This document shows, in pieces, positions 1 through 9,026 of a DNA stretch of 64,000 nucleotides (the stretch's first letter is position 1; each line of letters begins with the position of its first letter). The stretch covers positions 124,001 to 188,000 of the IMG/VR virus record IMGVR_UViG_3300029993_000005; one strand, written 5' to 3'. The notes under the pieces were generated by a model that made no database searches, was not told the origin of the DNA, and saw nothing but the letters and a program-made list of their open reading frames with translations. The position numbers and the translations under genes were made by a program.

Positions 1-507
1 ATGAGTACACCAAATGTATCAACCGTTCCAATTACTCCAATCCCTCCTAAACTACCACTAACTGCGGCCGAAATAAAGGCTGTTGTTATTCAGTATTGCT
101 TAGACAAGAATATGGCGGTTAACGCAGAAGTAGGGTTGTGCAAATATGGAAAACTAAGGGCTGACATACTAGCCCTGACCTTTGCTGGTGACACTACGGT
201 AATAGAAATTAAAAGCTCAGTTTCTGATTTCAAATCAGACAAGAAATGGCATAACTACTTGCCATTCGCAAATAAATTTTATTTTGCAATGAGTCCTGAG
301 GTCTACGCCAAAGTGCAGGACTCAATACCAAAAGAAGATGGTATTGGTGTCATGTTGATTACACAAGCAACTCATACTTACGGCAAACCTAGATTGCATA
401 TAGAACGCAAATCCAAGCATAAAGAAATAGAAGCTAGCATCAATATTGAGCTGATAATTAGACTGGCGTTCCGCAATGCTATGTTCAATCGCCTACACCG
501 GAAATAG
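1..507 (+). CDS. MmcB-like PD-(D/E)XK nuclease / DNA repair protein
   Basis: Motif RADILAL...VIEIKSSVSDFKSDKKWHNYLPFANKFYF matches the MmcB (DUF1052) pattern. Confidence 0.7.
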   Translation: MSTPNVSTVPITPIPPKLPLTAAEIKAVVIQYCLDKNMAVNAEVGLCKYGKLRADILALTFAGDTTVIEIKSSVSDFKSDKKWHNYLPFANKFYFAMSPEVYAKVQDSIPKEDGIGVMLITQATHTYGKPRLHIERKSKHKEIEASINIELIIRLAFRNAMFNRLHRK

Positions 508-522
508 AGGACTCAAATATTC

Positions 523-2133
523 ATGAGTACCAAGCCAGAGGCTTATGCGCGTGATCTAACCTGTGTCTATTGTGGTGGATCCTTGCCGGAAACTCATTCA
601 GCCTATTCTAAGTTGAGCAAGTACACCAAGGTAAAGACTGGTAACAAGTTGGCATTTTGTTGTTTGAGTCATGCTACGTTGTTCAACAATGCAAAGCGAA
701 CTCCTGAACAATTAGCCGATATTGGTGCAAAGACAAGTGCTGCACGTAGCAAACCAATACCAGCACACGATCTAAAATGTAATCATTGCGGCACCCCTAT
801 ACATCTAGGTCACAAAGCCTACAAAACAATAGGTGCCTATAACAAAGCAAAGGCTGGATTAATCAACGTCTTTTGCAGTCTTAATCATGCTCAGCTTTAT
901 ATCAATGAGCATCGTACCCACCAACAGAAACTCAAACGTAGGTCCACCATTTCTACTGGCTGTGTACAAAATGATAGTTCTAGCCAACGCCATGAGACAA
1001 TGAAGAACCGGGGTTCTTATAACCAGAGCAAGCCTGAACTAAGAATTTTTCATAAGCTGCGTCGAGTATTGCCGAACTTAGAATATCAGTATAGGAAGCG
1101 TGAGGGCTATCCCTATGCCGCTGATTTTTACGACCCCGACTCAGATACTATATTTGAGTATCAGGGCTTCATGACGCACGGTGGTGCTCCCTATGACTCT
1201 CAATCGTCCGAACATGCGTTAAGGGTCAAGCAGTTAAAACTCAGGGCCAAGACCGATAAATGGCTTGCTAAATTAACCTTAAAGATATGGACTAGTAGCG
1301 ATCCGCAGAAACGAGCGGCTATTCGTAAATCCAATATCAACTTTGTTGAATGGTTTACTGAGGAACAGTTTGAGACCTGGTATTCGACATTCCTTGCTCA
1401 ACACCTTGGCTCCGATAAATCAAAAGGACTGGCCTACAAATTTGGATCTCAAGTACTGTGTGCTTACGACGAGCTATTACGTGCCCGCCTATTGAATAAG
1501 TACCCTGATCTTATAACATTCTATCCCTGGGAAGACGTCAACAAGGTGGCTAAACTTCTGCTACCAAAAGACGTAATGTACGCTCGTAAATTAGAGGTGT
1601 GCGTAATACCCAACGATATAGCTGATCAATTCTGTGCCAAATATCACGTGCAGGGTAAATGTCGGGGAACTACTCTATCTATAGCTTTGGTTCAAGGACA
1701 TAGAATAATTGGGGCCATGACCTTTGGGACCCCTCGGTATAACAAGAATTTCGACTATGAATTATTACGCTTGTGTTTCAGCTCAGCCATAGTCGGCGGG
1801 TCCTCTAGAATGTGGAAACTCGCAGTCTCCAAATTAGGCAACCCTTCAGTAATATCCTATTGTGATCTCTCCAAATTTAACGGTAACGTTTATAGACAAT
1901 TAGGTTTCAAGCTCAAGAGAACCCCAATCCCAGGTCTTCATTGGTATAACCCGCTAAATGGACGCCATGTAACTGATAACCTATTACGTCAACGAGGATT
2001 TGATCAACTCGTGGGTTCTAAAATAAATACTGTCTATGGAAAAGGCACTAATAACGCTGAGCTCATGACCAGTCACGGATTTATACCTGTATATGATGAG
2101 GGGCAGGCTACCTTTATCTATAACCCAATTTAG
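523..2133 (+). CDS. Free-standing homing-type endonuclease: 2x Zn-binding repeat + Vsr-like nuclease + Mom-like GNAT domain
   Basis: Two CxxC...FC(C/S)xxH repeats; ADFYDPDSDTIFEYQGFMTHG nuclease motif; C-terminal YH.QG...GAMTFG.PRYNK.FDYELLRLCF...VISYCDLSKF.G.VY..LGF; paralogous to 3603..5564. Confidence 0.7.
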   Translation: MSTKPEAYARDLTCVYCGGSLPETHSAYSKLSKYTKVKTGNKLAFCCLSHATLFNNAKRTPEQLADIGAKTSAARSKPIPAHDLKCNHCGTPIHLGHKAYKTIGAYNKAKAGLINVFCSLNHAQLYINEHRTHQQKLKRRSTISTGCVQNDSSSQRHETMKNRGSYNQSKPELRIFHKLRRVLPNLEYQYRKREGYPYAADFYDPDSDTIFEYQGFMTHGGAPYDSQSSEHALRVKQLKLRAKTDKWLAKLTLKIWTSSDPQKRAAIRKSNINFVEWFTEEQFETWYSTFLAQHLGSDKSKGLAYKFGSQVLCAYDELLRARLLNKYPDLITFYPWEDVNKVAKLLLPKDVMYARKLEVCVIPNDIADQFCAKYHVQGKCRGTTLSIALVQGHRIIGAMTFGTPRYNKNFDYELLRLCFSSAIVGGSSRMWKLAVSKLGNPSVISYCDLSKFNGNVYRQLGFKLKRTPIPGLHWYNPLNGRHVTDNLLRQRGFDQLVGSKINTVYGKGTNNAELMTSHGFIPVYDEGQATFIYNPI

Positions 2134-2143
2134 TAGGACTACT

Positions 2144-3628
2144 ATGTTCACAAATAATAGATTGTTGGGGGTCAATGGAAAGACCATCAACATGAGTCAT
2201 CAGGTGTTTGGTAATAACGGAGCCTCTGTAGCCATGCGTAGTTATAAAGGCCGTGATGATGGCTCAAAAGTAAAGTTGAGTGCCAATGTAGTGGGGAGTA
2301 GTGGCGGTGGTGGAGCCTCTATGTCTGTTAATGGTTTCTGGCAATCTAATTACCAGTACTACATGACAGGGATTATCCCGGCAGACCCCCATCTTATTGA
2401 TACCTCAACGTTAGCTCTGTTCTACAGAGATATTTATATGTTCGATAGTGTCGGCGGGTCAGTAGTTGACATATTGTCGCATTTCCCATTCTCCAGTTGG
2501 GAACTCAGAGGCCTGGATGCTCAAGATTTAAAACCTTTCAATGACGCATTAGAAAGGTTGAATATTCAGACGATGCTACCCTTAATCAGCACCGCCCATT
2601 TAACTGATGGTTTCTTTTGTGGCTCCTTAGTATTCGATCCTAAGTCCAAACAGTTTATAGACACGATGTTGCACGATGCCTTGTCCTGTGCAGTTATTCC
2701 CTCACCGTTCTTTGGAATTGACCCTACGATTAATGTGCGGGTTGGCCAAGCAACACAGCAGTTCATGCACGATACATCAGAATACGCACGTCGATATCTG
2801 CAGCAAATGCCTCATCAGTTTGTCGACATGTTGAAAAGCGGTGCATTTACATTAGATCCAGTGACCACGATGTTTATTCCACGTCGATCCACAACGGATA
2901 GAGCTTATACATCGTTTCTACACCGTATTCTTCCGATGTATTTGATTGAGAAGACTCTGTTTCGTGGAACCTTAGTTGAGACTCAAAGACGTCAACGGGC
3001 AATGACACATTTGACGGCCGGTGACGATACATGGACTCCTACATCAGAAGAATTGAATCAATTGGTACAGTCTTTTCAACAGGCTGAATATGATCCTTTA
3101 GGTGGTTGGATATCTACACGTAACGCAGTGCAAGCAGTTGATCTCAGGCCTGGCGGAGATTTTTTTAAGTTTTCTGATATGGCTGATATATTTGTTCCCT
3201 ATAAGTTAAGGGCTTTAGGTGCCAGTGAATCATTCATGAGTCAGGAAGCCTGTTTGATAGGCTCTACCCAAATTAAACTTCAGAATGGTACGACCACGAG
3301 TATAGAGAGCCTAAGTCCTATCCATGGTCTAGCACCTCATGAACTAAAGAAAGGTCAGTGGTTTCCTCTAAATTTAGAACTACCCAATCGAATTTCGAAT
3401 TCTGCTAAAACTGAAGCTTGGTCATATCAAGGTTATAGGGAAACTTTTACGGTAACCACGGAAGATGGTAAACAAGTCACAGGGACTGAAAATCATCCAT
3501 TTTTTGTTTTATGTGAAGACGGAACTACTAAATGGAAACGTCTAGACGAGCTAAAAGAAGGTGATTTAATTGCGGTAGACGAAGAAGAACAGGAAGTTAA
3601 TAATGCCCAGACCACCGTCAGCAGCTAG
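2144..3628 (+). CDS. Portal protein N-terminal part (N-extein, 369 aa) fused to split intein N-half
   Basis: RBS AGGAC before ATG 2144; portal-like segment ...YKLRALGASESFMSQEA joins TYASQEAGYSLFLE... of ORF 5564; then intein block A CLIGSTQI. Confidence 0.8.
   Translation: MFTNNRLLGVNGKTINMSHQVFGNNGASVAMRSYKGRDDGSKVKLSANVVGSSGGGGASMSVNGFWQSNYQYYMTGIIPADPHLIDTSTLALFYRDIYMFDSVGGSVVDILSHFPFSSWELRGLDAQDLKPFNDALERLNIQTMLPLISTAHLTDGFFCGSLVFDPKSKQFIDTMLHDALSCAVIPSPFFGIDPTINVRVGQATQQFMHDTSEYARRYLQQMPHQFVDMLKSGAFTLDPVTTMFIPRRSTTDRAYTSFLHRILPMYLIEKTLFRGTLVETQRRQRAMTHLTAGDDTWTPTSEELNQLVQSFQQAEYDPLGGWISTRNAVQAVDLRPGGDFFKFSDMADIFVPYKLRALGASESFMSQEACLIGSTQIKLQNGTTTSIESLSPIHGLAPHELKKGQWFPLNLELPNRISNSAKTEAWSYQGYRETFTVTTEDGKQVTGTENHPFFVLCEDGTTKWKRLDELKEGDLIAVDEEEQEVNNAQTTVSS
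3251..3625 (+). mobile_element. Split intein N-half (IntN, 125 aa)
   Basis: Cys1 block A CLIGSTQIKLQNG; block B GKQVTGTENHPFF (TxxH) followed by WKRLDELKEGDLIAV; acidic tail DEEEQE then stop with no blocks F/G. Confidence 0.93.
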
Positions 3629-5564
3629 AATAAAAACTTTAAAATGTTCTTACTGCAATGAAATCATTTCAGAGACTCACGAAATATATAAGACTAGACG
3701 GGACTACGATGAAGCTACAGCTGGACTACGCACTGTGTTTTGCTGTAAAGGGCATAGTGTGTCTTATCGCCATGATAATTTAAGCCCGGAAGATAAATTT
3801 GCATATCATGAAAAGATAGCGACGTCCCGTAAAAATCGTAGTCCTGAAGAGAAACATTTGTCAGGGACTAAACTTAGAGACACCAAAGCTAATTTCTCGG
3901 AGGAGAAAAAAGCAGATATTCGAAGTAGAATCCAGGCAACGGCTAAAGCTAATGATTCCTATGCAAAGGCTGCATTGAAACGTGAGATCACCCTAATTGA
4001 GACTCATGGTCTGGACTACGGCAAGAAACGTCAGGTCAAAGCCCGAGAGACTATGCTGAGGGAGCATGGAATTCCATGCTCCCTAGTTAGCGGTAGTGTT
4101 TTTAGGGCCAAAGCTGAGGCTACAAATGTGGAACTTTATGGTTTTCATAACGCTACAATGAACCCACAAATTGCAGCGAAAACCGTAGCTACTTATACTG
4201 AACGTCATGGCGGTATGGGAAGAGCAAGTCCTAGCGCTAATGCTGAGTATAAGAAAACCATGATAAAAGAATATGGTACTGATCAACCAATGCAAGTTAA
4301 AGAGTTTGTAGACAAGGCTAGGGAAAAGTTTAGGCAAATAGGGCGTCTAAAGTCCAACGCTACTAAAATAAAAAATAATACGACGCCTAAAGAGGTTGCT
4401 TGGAAAGGCCATGCAACTAAAAAACTTAATGGCACGTACACAACTAATAAACAAGAGCAATACATCCTCCACTGTCTTAGATCTTTACTGGGGTGTCAGG
4501 TAGAATACTTGTATAGAGACCACCCGGATTACCCATGGGAAGCTGATTTCTATGATCCCGACTCAGATACTATATTTGAATACCAGGGTTACTTTACACA
4601 TGGTGACGAAGCTTATGACAAAAACAATAAACAGCATAAGCTAAAAGTTGCTGACTTAAGTACAAAAGAAGGCTGGGCTCCAGCTCTGACATTGAAAATA
4701 TGGACTAAACTAGATCCGTTAAAAAGAAAAACTGCTAAAAACAAAAACCTATCTTTTGTAGAGTGGTTTAATATCGAGCAATTTCATGTTTGGTTCTATA
4801 CTCAAATAGCCAAACTGTTTAACGCTAAACATAGCAGGGTCAAGAGTGGATGGTTTAAATTAGCTCCTGACTATTATTTAGCATCCCACTGTGCATTAGC
4901 TAACGTTAGACTTCCGAAAGGTAGAATTATTGTATTTTACCCATGGGACGATTTGAAAAAGCTTTCTCTTATAATTTCGAAAGAAAAAGAAATAATTTAT
5001 GCTAGAAAAACTAAAATATCAATCATAACCAAAGAAACAGCGGATAAATTCTGTGAGAAATATCATATGCAGGGATCCTGCCGAGGAACCGATTTAGCTT
5101 TAGGACTTTATGTTACAACAGCAGAAAATAATAATCGACTAGTTGGAGTCATGACATTTGGGAATCCTCGTTATAACAAGAAATTTGATTATGAACTATT
5201 ACGTTTATGTTTTTCTTCTTTAGTTGTTGGTGGCTCTCAAAAATTGTGGTCCGCAGCTAATAAGTATTTAACAGGTTCAGTAATAAGCTATTGTGATTTA
5301 TCCAAATTTTCTGGGGCTATCTACACTAAATTAGGATTTATCCAGAAAAATAAACCCAAATCTTCAATTGTTTGGTACAACCCGGAATCAGGAATTCGCA
5401 TCACGGATAACCTATTGCGCCAACGAGGATTCGATCAATTAATTGGTAAAAAATTGGGAATCATATATGGCAAGGGTGAATCTAATAATGCACTTATGAA
5501 AAAATATGGTTTTATTCCTGTTCAAGACCAAGGGCAGTCCGTGTACATTACGGAGTTAAAATAA
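3603..5564 (+). CDS. Free-standing endonuclease between the intein halves (Zn repeat, T..E.YG repeats, Vsr-like nuclease, Mom-like GNAT)
   Basis: ADFYDPDSDTIFEYQGYFTHG motif; GNAT-like C-terminus as in 523..2133; overlaps portal-N stop by 26 nt, and its TAA overlaps the next ATG (TAATG). Confidence 0.75.
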   Translation: MPRPPSAARIKTLKCSYCNEIISETHEIYKTRRDYDEATAGLRTVFCCKGHSVSYRHDNLSPEDKFAYHEKIATSRKNRSPEEKHLSGTKLRDTKANFSEEKKADIRSRIQATAKANDSYAKAALKREITLIETHGLDYGKKRQVKARETMLREHGIPCSLVSGSVFRAKAEATNVELYGFHNATMNPQIAAKTVATYTERHGGMGRASPSANAEYKKTMIKEYGTDQPMQVKEFVDKAREKFRQIGRLKSNATKIKNNTTPKEVAWKGHATKKLNGTYTTNKQEQYILHCLRSLLGCQVEYLYRDHPDYPWEADFYDPDSDTIFEYQGYFTHGDEAYDKNNKQHKLKVADLSTKEGWAPALTLKIWTKLDPLKRKTAKNKNLSFVEWFNIEQFHVWFYTQIAKLFNAKHSRVKSGWFKLAPDYYLASHCALANVRLPKGRIIVFYPWDDLKKLSLIISKEKEIIYARKTKISIITKETADKFCEKYHMQGSCRGTDLALGLYVTTAENNNRLVGVMTFGNPRYNKKFDYELLRLCFSSLVVGGSQKLWSAANKYLTGSVISYCDLSKFSGAIYTKLGFIQKNKPKSSIVWYNPESGIRITDNLLRQRGFDQLIGKKLGIIYGKGESNNALMKKYGFIPVQDQGQSVYITELK

Positions 5565-5680
5565 TGAAGTTTGTAAAAATAGTTTCAATTGAGGCCTCTG
5601 GTAAAAACCATGTATATGATATAGCCATGGCTAAAGACGAGGATCCCTCATTTATTGCAAATGGTATTATTGTGCATAAT
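5564..5680 (+). mobile_element. Split intein C-half (IntC, 39 aa)
   Basis: MKFVKIVSIEASGKNHVYDIAMAKDEDPSFIANGIIVHN: block F VYDI, block G terminal HN, followed by +1 Thr (5681-5683). Confidence 0.95.
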
Positions 5681-6469
5681 ACCTATGCCAGCCAAGAAGC
5701 GGGGTATAGCCTATTCTTGGAAACAACTAATAGCTATCGGACAGACTTAACCGAACGTATTTTCAACTCAAAATTATTTCCGTTGATAGCCGTTGTTAAT
5801 AATCTGTATAAAGATCCTAGTAAAGGTAGAGCCAAGGGTGGTCAGCTACTTGATTTTTTGTTTAACAGAAACAATCGTAACAACTTGAAAATGCCACAAC
5901 TTCACTGGCATAAGGAGTTGGAAGCCAAGGGTGAAGACAACATGGCTGAACTCCTGGAATTAGCCTCTGACAAGGGTGTACCTATTCCATTGAAGATGTG
6001 GATGGCTGCTTCCAAAATTGATCCAGAATCATTGTTACGTGACCTATCTGAGGACCAAGCCTTACGCGATAAATTAGCTCAGTACACGGGTAAGGACACT
6101 AGCCATGAGGGTGAGGACGATCATGAGTTCTCTGATGAAGACGATAACGCGCATGATGGTCGGGGTGTAGACGTCAGAGGCTCGGTTCCAGGTGAACGTT
6201 TAACTACTCAACGCCTAAGTCAAATGATTCAAAGTCCACGTGTTCCGCTATTAGCCCGCGAGTTTGGGGACTCTGGTGACTCATGGACCTTCACAAAGAC
6301 GGGTAAGGTCAAACATGTTCCTTCAATAGCTAAGGCTGACCGTAATGCTAAGGCCAATGACACGATATTGAAAATTGCCAAACAGGCGGACAGGGATCCT
6401 CATTATCGTGAAGAATTAAAGAAAAGGAATCAGGCCAAACTCGGGCGTACAAAAGTTAAAGACATGTAA
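5564..6469 (+). CDS. IntC fused to portal protein C-terminal part (C-extein, 262 aa)
   Basis: After HN: TYASQEAGYSLFLETTNSYRTDLTERIFNSKLFPLIA, a portal stem-like helix continuing the N-extein. Confidence 0.8.
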   Translation: MKFVKIVSIEASGKNHVYDIAMAKDEDPSFIANGIIVHNTYASQEAGYSLFLETTNSYRTDLTERIFNSKLFPLIAVVNNLYKDPSKGRAKGGQLLDFLFNRNNRNNLKMPQLHWHKELEAKGEDNMAELLELASDKGVPIPLKMWMAASKIDPESLLRDLSEDQALRDKLAQYTGKDTSHEGEDDHEFSDEDDNAHDGRGVDVRGSVPGERLTTQRLSQMIQSPRVPLLAREFGDSGDSWTFTKTGKVKHVPSIAKADRNAKANDTILKIAKQADRDPHYREELKKRNQAKLGRTKVKDM

Positions 6470-6477
6470 GGACCACT

Positions 6478-6735
6478 ATGTATTCGTTCCTAGTAAAGGA
6501 AGTTCCTGTGTCAGTAAGTCTTGAACCAGAATACCAGTGGTTTACCTATCACGGACGTTCACCCGTTCTAATTAAGTTCCAAGGTAAGTCACTGGCTATT
6601 GGAAAGGGAAAACGTTTTGGTGTTCGGCCCTCGACTTCGGGCACTGAAATTCGTTTAGTTTTTCCCGAGGATAAGTCAAAGGTATTAACCATTAGCAGAG
6701 AACAGGCTGAAAGTTTAGCCAAAGGAGTGAAGTAA
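6478..6735 (+). CDS. Hypothetical phage protein
   Basis: 85-aa ORF, RBS AGGAC, in operon. Confidence 0.6.
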   Translation: MYSFLVKEVPVSVSLEPEYQWFTYHGRSPVLIKFQGKSLAIGKGKRFGVRPSTSGTEIRLVFPEDKSKVLTISREQAESLAKGVK

Positions 6736-7136
6736 TGGACACGCATTCTTCAGAAACCGGGGTCGACATAGAACCCGATAAAGAGTCCACTATTAAATAC
6801 TACGGTATTTTATTTGACGACTATACACCTCCAGTCGAGGGTCAAATTCTCAGGGACTGCTTAGCTCTGCAGAACATTGCGGGGCACTCAGTTGATGAAT
6901 TAGTTATTGTTTGTGAAAGTGAGGCCCCCGATTCTTTACTAAAAGCCTTGGGCTTACGCAGAGTAGGGGACCCATCTTTAACCGATGACTGGATTGTTTA
7001 TCGCACTCAAGAAGAGTGGCCCGAACCTCCTGATAATGCCACAACAGTAACGCAAAGAGACTTGTGGGTACAGCTAGGAAAAGAGAATCTGACGGTCATG
7101 GACGAGCAACATACTAATGGCTACTATTTGCCGCCT
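6735..7136 (+). CDS. Exon 1 of intron-interrupted hypothetical protein (predicted spliced product 165 aa)
   Basis: ORF runs into intron P1/P2; predicted 5' splice site after ...CCG CCT (7136), a codon boundary. Confidence 0.65.
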
Positions 7137-7479
7137 TTTTACCTGGGGCCGCTTAGCAGTAATGTTAAGTGATAAGGTTTTGAATTGCTGGAAACCCCTT
7201 AGAGCTTCTTGAACCACAACGCGTAACCACCAAATGGTTAGATGGTTAGATCGTGAAGGTTTGAAAATCAAGAAGATTGGGCAATCAGCAGCGAAGCTCG
7301 AAAGAGAACGTTCAACGACTAGGCCGTAAGGCCGTACCTACCAAGTGGTGGGGAAGTGGAGCCCTCCTAGAAATTTAGGATGAAGATATAGTCTGAACAT
7401 CTGGTGAAAGCCAGAGCAGCTACTCGATGGTAAGACGAGCAAGCGCCTTTAGCCTAACGAGCTGAGGGGAACATAAATG
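7137..7479 (+). ncRNA. Group I self-splicing intron, subgroup IA2, no internal ORF
   Basis: P AATTGCTGGAAA 7183-7194; Q AATCAGCAG 7283-7291; R GTTCAACGACTA 7310-7321; S AAGATATAGTCT 7383-7394; P2 CTTAGCA-GTAA-TGTTAAG; P7.1 GGCC-GTAA-GGCC; P7.2; P8; P9 with GAAA loop; 3' end GAACATAAATG resembles the T4 td intron end. Confidence 0.9.
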
Positions 7480-7575
7480 CAAGGAAGACTTAGTCCAGAT
7501 ACGATTAGTTTGTTACGTCCGGCACCAAATGGCTACGTTCCAACTGACCCCTCTCTTATATTGATTTGGTCCTAA
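7480..7575 (+). CDS. Exon 2 of intron-interrupted hypothetical protein (QGRLSPDTISLLRPAPNGYVPTDPSLILIWS*)
   Basis: In frame with exon 1 if splicing occurs at 7136/7480. Confidence 0.65.
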   Translation, partial: QGRLSPDTISLLRPAPNGYVPTDPSLILIWS

Positions 7576-7697
7576 CCCGTTTTTTAATTAAGCATAATTC
7601 TAAGTCCCAATTTAATAGTATCTCGAACTTGATGTCCGAATCGTTTTGTTTGCGCTTTGACGATTAGCTCTGTGGGAAGGGTCGGGCACTAAGTCTT

Positions 7698-7738
7698 GGG
7701 AGGGCCTACGGCTTCGAGGCTTGCCCTCCCTCTTTTTT
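7698..7738 (+). terminator. Rho-independent terminator
   Basis: GGGAGGGC/GCCCTCCC stem followed by TCTTTTTT. Confidence 0.7.
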
Positions 7739-7862
7739 ATTTAATTTAAGTCTAATCCCTAATCCCTAATCTTTACCTTTACCCAAGAGACGGCTAGCTC
7801 TTGAGGTTCCAAACTTCAGCCGTCTCTTCGGTGTTCATTAGCTTCAACAGGGCACCAAAATC

Positions 7863-9026
7863 ATGAGTGGATTAACATCGGCTATCAGCCAAGCAGTATC
7901 CCAAATTCAGGCTAATACCACGGGCAGCGTCAATGGTGCAATTCAGGGCCTAACTGGTGCTCAGGCTAACGCACGTAACGCCATTGCCTCAGGTATTAGC
8001 GGTGCAGTAAATAATACAGTGAAGGCCCTAAGCAGCACCGTAATAGGATCAGTTGGAAGCCTAATTCAAGGTAATGTGAGCGGAGCCTTGTCCAATCTGA
8101 CAAATGCCCCAGGTAACATCATCAGTTCGGCGTTAGCGGGCTTAGGTGGTCAAGCTAATGTCGCACTAAGCGGTGCTGGCTCCCTAGGCTCTATGGTCGG
8201 TATAGGCGGTGCTAATCCAGGTAATAGTTTGGGCGGTGCCAATGCAAGGCCTGATCCTTTATTGAGTTTCTGCTGGTATGCTCAGCTACCGGTAATTAGT
8301 CCGGGTTCCACCCAGAACGCAGCATCGGCTAGCACCACGTCAATTCTCAATAATTTAAGTTCGACGTTACTAACTGGTTTGTCCTCGTCTGTTGGCGGTG
8401 CCGTATCCACGTCTAATGCATCGTCCTTGCCCTGGTATTACGTTGAGGAAGCTGCATTACCTTTTCGTAACTACAGCCTCAAGTCTATTTTCAGAGAAGG
8501 TAGAGAACGTCATTACCCAGATCGCTACAACGTAGATCAGCTCAAGCTCGCAATTTATGCTGATTCGGATAACACCAGCACTCAGTATCTGCAAGCTTGG
8601 AACAACGCAATTATTACACCCTTTAGTTCGGCAACAGCAGCAACTCTAGCCGGTGGGTGGGGTAGACCCTCCGACTACAAGAAATCGATCTTTATCTACA
8701 TGCTTGACGTTACAAAAAACGTGCTGGCCATCATTGAGTACATCGAGTGCTGGCCTGTTACCATTGCCGAATACAACATGGATAGTGGAACATCGACGCG
8801 TATTGTTAACCACGTGAGTTTTAGTGTGGGTGACGTTTTCATTAACTTGATACCCGTACCCTCGACTTTCACCCAGAGCATAACCTCAAGTCTAAGTAAC
8901 AACGCAATAACTTCAGTGATTAACGGGTTTGCCAATTCTGGAATTTCAGGTGCTATTCAATCAGTGCAATCCTCAATTTCTAGTTTAGCACCAGCTGTTG
9001 GTTCGGCAATTAACGCAATATTTTAA
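7863..9026 (+). CDS. Tail tube-like / tube initiator protein (T4 gp19/gp54-like core) with Ser/Gly-rich flanks
   Basis: Core VEEAALPF...YPDRYNVDQLKLAIY...QAWNNAI...DYKKSIFIYMLD...ECWPVTI resembles the tube fold; heads the tail operon. Confidence 0.6.
   Translation: MSGLTSAISQAVSQIQANTTGSVNGAIQGLTGAQANARNAIASGISGAVNNTVKALSSTVIGSVGSLIQGNVSGALSNLTNAPGNIISSALAGLGGQANVALSGAGSLGSMVGIGGANPGNSLGGANARPDPLLSFCWYAQLPVISPGSTQNAASASTTSILNNLSSTLLTGLSSSVGGAVSTSNASSLPWYYVEEAALPFRNYSLKSIFREGRERHYPDRYNVDQLKLAIYADSDNTSTQYLQAWNNAIITPFSSATAATLAGGWGRPSDYKKSIFIYMLDVTKNVLAIIEYIECWPVTIAEYNMDSGTSTRIVNHVSFSVGDVFINLIPVPSTFTQSITSSLSNNAITSVINGFANSGISGAIQSVQSSISSLAPAVGSAINAIF

Follow-up and report, generated by a model that had tools for sequence, protein, structure and literature searches.

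The 64,000-nucleotide (nt) stretch of DNA analysed here (the window) covers bases 124,001-188,000 of the 230,110-bp IMG/VR virus record IMGVR_UViG_3300029993_000005, which is rated 97% complete. Near its left end, a class-1 split intein interrupts a portal gene at nt 3250/5681. The N-terminal half of the intein (IntN) closes a first open reading frame (ORF) and the C-terminal half (IntC) opens a second. The slot between the halves holds an endonuclease gene, named HEG-2, and a paralogous endonuclease gene, HEG-1, is situated upstream of the portal start. Overall, the locus very likely represents a fractured portal gene of a phiRSL1-like jumbo phage, with a free-standing Hef-like homing endonuclease gene in the slot of its class-1 split intein. 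The positions of all features are given in Table 1.

Profile and alignment analysis distinguished the two parts of the portal. The portal profile phrog_16240 exits at position 377 in the first ORF and re-enters at 377 in the second, and the exteins joined in silico gave a gapless alignment to the uninterrupted portals of Ralstonia phage phiRSL1 (ORF211) and Burkholderia phage BcepSauron (gp251). The intein-free junction reconstructed in the initial annotation, CAGGAAGCC/ACCTATGCC (slashes mark the insertion point here and below), was found to be exact. Both intein halves match the Pfam Intein_splicing family. IntN begins with Cys1 (CLIGST) and shows block B as T-E-N-H, and IntC ends with IIVHN followed by Thr+1. 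Blocks A, B, F and G, along with Cys1, T-x-x-H, HN and Thr+1, occur in the window and likewise in five diverged relatives. The closest solved intein to IntN is Mxe GyrA (E 4.6e-7). The acidic tail of IntN in the window is 13 amino acids (aa) longer than that of the relatives. The intein sits at a conserved portal motif with the consensus SGDA/SYASAES and is split at the canonical endonuclease-insertion point.

The reading frames were as described in the initial annotation. The IntN and IntC ORFs are in one frame (starts 2093 and 5564, offset 3471 nt), and HEG-2 is read as a 653-aa ORF in the +1 frame. HEG-2 overlaps the end of the IntN ORF (3628) by 26 nt, and the TAATG at 5562-5566 joins its TAA stop, through a single common base, to the ATG of the ORF for IntC and the portal C-extein. 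A GGAG is present 8 nt upstream of this ATG. The portal start needed qualification: the longest ORF opens at 2093, but alignment with BcepSauron makes nt 2144 the more likely start.

From the IntN stop to the IntC start the portal frame contains 83 stops, so the intein is genuinely split. A contiguous intein broken by a sequencing error was ruled out by these stops and by the same layout in independent contigs and relatives. Reading of the interval under another genetic code was also rejected, as nothing in the genome calls for it. In three other IMG/VR contigs the portal N-extein is 100% identical and both endonuclease ORFs are present, and the HEG-2 protein was found on 11 contigs. Since independent contigs repeat the layout, it is not an assembly artefact. 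In structure prediction, the complex of IntN and IntC reached an interface score (ipSAE) of 0.70, compared with 0.00 for the best of three controls. A mark of 0.70 was attained by 51 of 78 solved complexes and by 2 of 108 mismatched pairs.

Table 1. Features at the portal locus (positions in nt of the window)
Feature	Position	Strand	Basis
MmcB-like gene (context only)	1..507	+	Pfam PF06319, E 1.9e-19
HEG-1, free-standing paralogous Hef-like endonuclease, 536 aa	523..2133	+	46% identity to HEG-2 over aa 248-649
Portal N-extein	2144..3250	+	phrog_16240 portal, E 2.5e-129, profile positions 27-377; start codon inferred
IntN, 125 aa + stop	3251..3628	+	Pfam Intein_splicing, E 7.5e-9
HEG-2, Hef-like homing endonuclease, 653 aa, +1 frame relative to portal	3603..5564	+	ORF list; orthologues in same split-intein slot
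Zinc-ribbon-like module CxxC...CCxxH, single, HEG-2 aa 12-55	3636..3767	+	Read from sequence; alignable with both HEG-1 modules
Five to six helical T..E.YG repeats (DUF7487 N-terminal part), presumed DNA-binding array	3978..4337	+	Pfam PF24308, E 4e-12, aa 146-243
Vsr-like (EDxHD-type) nuclease domain, HEG-2 aa about 261-405	4383..4817	+	Structure match; D315, E326, H333
Mom-family GNAT domain, HEG-2 aa about 446-653	4938..5561	+	AlphaFold2 (AF2) pLDDT 95.4; Foldseek; phrog_1384
IntC, 39 aa, blocks F and G, ends ...IIVHN	5564..5680	+	Pfam Intein_splicing, profile positions 120-155
Portal C-extein, first residue Thr+1	5681..6469	+	phrog_16240, profile positions 377-638, E 4.6e-61

HEG-2 is composed of an N-terminal zinc module, a series of helical repeats, a nuclease domain and a C-terminal GNAT domain. 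The initial annotation had described a zinc repeat; the module is present but single, and repeated modules belong to HEG-1. The T..E.YG repeats noticed there match the Pfam family DUF7487, and in the AF2 model they form stacked helical hairpins with a predicted local distance difference test score (pLDDT) above 90. When the model of the nuclease domain was compared with 48,161 chains by VIA-align, the top match was Vsr (1cw0, Z 8.2), in agreement with the Vsr-like fold proposed earlier. The homing endonuclease I-Bth0305I (3r3p) was the third match (Z 7.2, 93 of 98 residues aligned), DUF559-like 3hrl scored Z 6.2, and further domains of the DUF559, RAP and VRR-NUC types followed. Three residues of the nuclease, D315, E326 and H333, show conservation of at least 90% across 66 family members and do not vary among 7 orthologues, and E326 occupies the position of Vsr Phe62. 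HEG-2 also matches phrog_3339, annotated as 'homing endonuclease' (E 1.4e-35). Foldseek gave no significant match for a model of the repeats plus the nuclease, NCBIfam returned only XF1762 matches, all of them sub-threshold, and searches of PDB sequences with phmmer and a family profile had no match for either the GNAT or the nuclease. The initial annotation of HEG-2 as a Vsr-like endonuclease, encoded in a separate frame inside the endonuclease slot of the intein, is supported.

A scan of IMG/VR by means of an N-extein alignment gave 51 portal loci, three of them from the window's phage. Most of these loci have an empty site, SGDA/SYA.AES. At exactly the window's site, L057 contains a mini-intein of ~128 aa and L050 an intein of ~490 aa with an in-frame LAGLIDADG domain; both have the intein blocks in common with the window. 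Orthologues of HEG-2 (41-51% identity) are situated between homologous portal intein halves in the metagenomic contigs L007, L008, L009 and L015. A fifth lineage, a single phage represented by L018, L019 and L064, possesses a homologous split intein 6 codons downstream, between Glu and Ser (SGDASFASAE/.../SAYS); one of the 51 portal loci has this arrangement. One intein family is thus found at two neighbouring sites of one portal motif. In this phage (L064:5959-9781) the endonuclease is also homologous, and its protein, P0010, ends just past the motif that opens the GNAT and hence has no GNAT domain. The extein flanks of the window (3230-3250 and 5681-5704) read SQEA/TYASQEAG, compared with SGDA/SYASAESA in nearly all relatives, intein present or not. 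This deviation could reflect co-conversion, adaptation to splicing or an old target-site immunity.

A tree of N-exteins was constructed without the junction-proximal residues. The eight intein-bearing portals require 8 changes on this tree, the same number as with shuffled labels, and the nearest neighbour of each of them is intein-free. Such scattered presence fits what is expected of a mobile element. The initial annotation had proposed that a free-standing endonuclease invaded a mini-intein, and the empty, mini-intein, LAGLIDADG and split-intein alleles of the relatives fit this proposal.

Some observations weigh against a mobile split intein with an active homing endonuclease. Five of the eight intein-bearing rows of the tree (window, L007, L008, L009 and L015) have a source other than the portal-based scan; four of them were found through the endonuclease, which enriches for intein-bearing loci. 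Between lineages, the intein and the endonuclease have diverged about as far as the exteins, which leaves no sign of a recent sweep, and long vertical descent with repeated precise loss could also give a patchy pattern. The match to Vsr is middling (Z 8.2), and the final Asp of EDxHD could not be located with confidence. The predicted complex of IntN and IntC may pass through memory of solved split inteins. The even divergence, with no recent spread visible, would also suit a decaying relic, in which splicing has ceased, the portal functions as two non-covalently associated pieces and the endonuclease is inert or domesticated; the split NrdA of phage Aeh1 works as such associated pieces (PMC3045599). 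The window also lacks the structured spacer which the relatives keep upstream of the endonuclease. A relic is nevertheless very improbable, as the splicing residues and the checked nuclease residues are all intact in every lineage at 40-50% divergence, the ORFs are uninterrupted and the intein halves are predicted to dock.

HEG-1, which was missed in the initial annotation, contains two zinc modules, a Vsr-like nuclease and a Mom-like GNAT domain. It matches the same PHROGs as HEG-2 and is 46% identical to it from the nuclease onward. The gene forms a clean insertion that separates the MmcB-like gene from the start of the portal (placed at 2144), and it is not found at this position in phiRSL1, BcepSauron, L007 and L008. 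L016 possesses an orthologue of HEG-1 (P0008, 53% identity) at the same position, beside an intein-free portal with Asn as +1 residue. As relatives carry either insertion without the other, the insertions of HEG-1 and HEG-2 occur independently. At the place corresponding to HEG-1, L009 encodes a 215-aa DUF7487 protein, on account of which the region upstream of the portal looks like an insertion hot spot. The window phage's own genome holds two copies of the family only, both at the portal.

The distribution of the family was analyzed by scanning all 1.84 billion cluster representatives for the GNAT domain at E <= 1e-3. The scan identified 8,061 proteins, of which 2,732 also passed E <= 1e-10, and the GNAT is nearly always situated at the C-terminal end of proteins of 400-800 aa. 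Among 66 sampled members, 45 match DUF7487, and the N-terminal parts comprise varied helix-turn-helix (HTH), zinc-ribbon or NUMOD modules. The nuclease is about 145 aa long with a helical insert in the window's subfamily, compared with about 85 aa in most members. In phage records the GNAT domain occurs in 309 genomes, usually annotated as 'Hef-like homing endonuclease', and some phages are multi-copy, with 9-11 places in Campylobacter phages. Acinetobacter phage Acj9 p227, encoded between nrdA and nrdB, Campylobacter phage NCTC12673 gp072 and PA5oct gp145 match the hidden Markov models (HMMs) of the family for both nuclease (E 7e-17 to 3e-10) and GNAT (E 3e-28 to 5e-48). As these classic Hef proteins match both HMMs, HEG-2 is a member of the Hef-like family, and its GNAT tail is a family trait, not something specific to the portal locus. 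In an unrelated metagenomic phage contig (L013:175-2861 and 4001-6490), three DUF7487-type genes of 609, 221 and 829 aa lie within 6 kb, which shows that the family can be multi-copy and free-standing.

Multiple copies and strong conservation of the GNAT would also be expected if the protein were not a homing endonuclease but a one-polypeptide weapon resembling a restriction-modification system, with the Mom domain protecting the phage genome, the nuclease hitting host or competitor DNA and the intein position being incidental. Iyer et al. 2021 already noted Mom domains fused to nucleases of the restriction endonuclease (REase) fold in jumbo phages and read them as restriction-modification-like (PMC7824862, section 3.4.7); PA5oct is cited there for five 'momylating enzymes'. 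The idea of a one-gene restriction-modification-like unit in the initial annotation was hence already in print for these fusions (PMC7824862). HEG-2 shows the same domain fusion, and PA5oct carries members of its family; the window gene, in contrast, lies in a homing context. It is read as a homing endonuclease because of the intein slot and the patchy alleles. A weapon is improbable here, since the gene lies exactly in the endonuclease slot of the intein in six lineages, with patchy presence and empty sites in close relatives. The family also includes classic free-standing Hef genes beside conserved genes such as nrdB, its N-terminal DNA-binding modules vary as expected for differing specific targets, and the window phage holds its two copies only at the portal.

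The C-terminal domain of HEG-2 had been annotated as a Mom-like GNAT, and its AF2 model, which was built with 68 homologues, agrees with this. Foldseek against PDB gave Mu Mom (8BV8) as the top match (E 2.5e-8, 207 columns), ahead of ordinary GNATs, and VIA-align gave Z 13.1 at 21% identity. Profile searches for Mom were divided: the Mom-like family phrog_1384 was matched at E 1.4e-7, but P0001 had no match to the Pfam Mom family PF25680 at E <= 0.1. PF25680 is matched by 11 of the 66 family members at E <= 1e-3. The GNAT group of HEG-2 is a sister of Mom and not Mom proper.

Residue conservation analysis showed about twenty positions invariant across 68 diverged GNAT domains. When Mu Mom was added to this alignment, its residues H58, E108, R111, D149, Y159 and W181 fell on columns invariant in 68 of 68 domains; in Mu Mom, momylation is lost or greatly reduced when these residues are mutated (PMC13219725). 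The invariant W591 aligns with Mom W181, and the helices after W591 in the model correspond to the Mom-type insertion after the core. Among six portal-intein orthologues, the GNAT and the nuclease each have a mean pairwise identity of 0.56, and the zinc module, linker and repeats have 0.34-0.40. The GNAT remains 45-55% identical among proteins whose N-terminal parts share 13-20%. The domain also exists as stand-alone copies (P0133 and P0036). The initial annotation had suggested assays with acetyl-CoA and had taken absence of acetyl-CoA-binding residues as evidence against activity. As Mu Mom is reported to use Gly-tRNA(Gly) and not acetyl-CoA as donor (PMC13219725), these tests are the wrong ones.

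It is tentatively proposed that the GNAT binds, and probably modifies, adenine of duplex DNA at or near the sites of the enzyme, with an aminoacyl-tRNA as donor, and confers self-immunity. We lean to an active GNAT because the invariant positions match the Mom active site and stand-alone copies exist. Self-immunity would be of most use to free-standing copies that still have their target in the genome they reside in. The sole GNAT-less orthologue found at this intein, P0010, sits where the insertion destroys the target; this fits such a role, in a single lineage.

Several features speak against an active domain, and some of them suit a tail without catalytic function, a Mom-derived duplex-DNA clamp, base-flipping or dimerisation domain which would aid binding or distortion of the site by the nuclease. 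The counterpart of the essential Mom residue S124 is position 545 (Ala in 51, Ser in 14 and Thr in 3 of 68 domains) or 546, depending on the alignment. Position 545 is Ser in both window copies, but it is Ala in most members, and in Mu Mom the S124A mutant has no catalytic activity (PMC13219725). For Mom R151 the only match is an invariant Lys shifted by one residue, the dimerisation residue W48 lacks conservation, and P0001 falls below Pfam's Mom model. With hhalign, the GNAT family gave a weak result against Mu Mom alone, and 68.5% probability over 50 columns only against an alignment of 43 Mom sequences; forced longer alignments conflict with one another and with MAFFT in the motif-A region. 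The GNAT-less P0010 persists in the homologous split-intein slot 6 codons downstream, so the GNAT is not needed for persistence of the gene at that slot. At this particular site the inserted intein already removes the target, which makes self-immunity unnecessary there. A non-catalytic tail is still considered unlikely. The invariant positions include the counterparts of the active-site residues H58, R111, D149 and Y159, the contrast between the conserved GNAT and the variable N-terminal parts fits a fixed small substrate or cofactor better than variable DNA sites, and the stand-alone copies also disfavour a mere aid to the nuclease. Whether Hef-family enzymes in general are bifunctional, joining tRNA-dependent Mom-type adenine modification with site-specific cleavage in one polypeptide and so marking or immunising their own sites, is doubtful on present evidence.

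From this anatomy we infer the following working of the fractured portal. The portal N-extein with IntN and IntC with the portal C-extein would be made as two separate polypeptides, with translation of the second coupled to that of the endonuclease ORF, and the intein halves would associate and trans-splice to give an intact portal. HEG-2 may recognise its DNA site by means of the variable zinc ribbon and the helical repeats and cut it through the Vsr-like domain, with the intein-free portal allele of co-infecting relatives as the probable target. Recombinational repair would then copy intein and endonuclease into the cleaved genome. HEG-1 is a further free-standing insertion, separate from that of HEG-2.

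The locus is a fractured gene as described by Dassa et al. 2009 (PMC2677866) with a Hef-like endonuclease, a kind which is already known. As in the loci of that study, the split falls at a conserved site of an essential phage gene, IntN closes the first ORF and IntC opens the second with the break at the canonical endonuclease-insertion point, a Vsr-like endonuclease ORF lies in its own frame between the halves, and hairpins occur upstream of the endonuclease in the window's relatives. It differs in its host gene, which is a portal here and comprises DNA-synthesis and repair enzymes and a phage terminase in that study; the words 'portal' and 'acetyltransferase' are both absent from the text of PMC2677866. 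HEG-2 is also much longer and ends with a Mom-family GNAT, whereas the Vsr domain modelled in that study is at positions 196-315. Further, the window has no spacer hairpin, and the start of the endonuclease overlaps IntN.

In three relatives, spacers of 100-110 nt separate the IntN stop from the endonuclease start (L007:4889-5003, L009:4894-5003 and L015:3898-4003; the comparison region in the window is 3540-3640). The core of these three spacers is conserved (GCCGGCCAGC...TTTTGCTC[CG]TATCA..CTAG) and lies inside a long outer stem whose sequence varies by locus while its complementarity is kept. L008 and L018 have different hairpins. An Rfam search of the structured spacers of the relatives gave no match. 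These hairpins may be of the control-hairpin type that Dassa et al. described upstream of free-standing endonucleases. In the window the spacer has been lost entirely, and the ATG of HEG-2 falls inside the lengthened tail of IntN.

HEG-2 shares with Hef-like EDxHD enzymes (U5 Hef; I-Bth0305I, PDB 3R3P) the Vsr-like core with a conserved Asp, an extra Glu at the Vsr Phe62 position and a His (PMC3239194). Variable N-terminal DNA-binding modules are also common to both, and classic Hefs match the nuclease and GNAT profiles of the family. U5 Hef is reported to cleave nrdB (PMC2988022, which cites Sandegren 2005). I-Bth0305I is different in being intron-encoded, with NUMOD/HTH modules, the nuclease as last domain and no GNAT (PMC3239194). 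With Mu Mom (8BV8; PMC13219725, PMC7261163) the GNAT of HEG-2 shares the fold, the Mom-type insertion after the core and the counterparts of H58, E108, R111, D149, Y159 and W181, Mu Mom being its best Foldseek match. The two differ in that their identity is only 16-21% and that the counterparts of S124, R151 and W48 are not conserved; moreover, Mu Mom is a stand-alone dimer while the GNAT of HEG-2 is fused to a nuclease. Portal inteins and out-of-frame endonucleases have been described among actinobacteriophage inteins (bioRxiv 10.1101/2025.01.02.630785), so portals are known as intein hosts. The window differs from these in representing a proteobacterial jumbo phage with a truly split intein and a Hef-type endonuclease with a GNAT tail.

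The portal is 73-76% identical in tblastn to those of phiRSL1 and BcepSauron, and by this similarity the source of the window is taken to be a phiRSL1-like jumbo phage. Megablast of window nt 1-8000 against phage records found no near relative. All genes in the first 6.5 kb of the window are on the plus strand. In relatives (L007, L008, L015, L016 and L018) the MmcB-like gene is conserved to the left of the portal. No tRNA gene was found in the window. Outside the window, on the minus strand of the same genome (G000:C1:38422-41445, equal to L076:1423-4446), a 1007-aa ORF resembling GyrB/topoisomerase II shows intein-splicing and HINT matches near residues 151-284 and 800-872, with GyrB and Toprim matches between them. 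This ORF probably holds one or two further inteins.

The new details are the portal as host gene in phiRSL1-like jumbo phages, the paralogous endonuclease upstream, the allelic series, the GNAT-less variant and the scattered presence of the intein. A structural gene, the portal of phiRSL1-like jumbo phages, thereby joins the hosts of fractured genes. The natural series is unusually complete, with empty, mini-intein, LAGLIDADG-intein and split-intein alleles, the last with an endonuclease, and a GNAT-less split-intein variant 6 codons away; it bears on the gain and exchange of endonucleases by inteins. Natural split inteins serve as protein-ligation tools, and this family offers several diverged pairs with Ser or Thr at +1. 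Mom-REase fusions, elsewhere read as restriction-modification-like, are Hef-like homing endonucleases. The role of a strongly conserved Mom-type domain in homing endonucleases becomes a question of general interest, and one that can be tested since the donor of Mom was identified as Gly-tRNA (2023-2026). The fractured portal provides a natural test bed for it, with GNAT-bearing copies, a GNAT-less orthologue and empty, mini-intein and full-intein alleles at one motif. If Hef enzymes do prove to be bifunctional, they would constitute a self-contained selfish drive which cuts others and protects itself.

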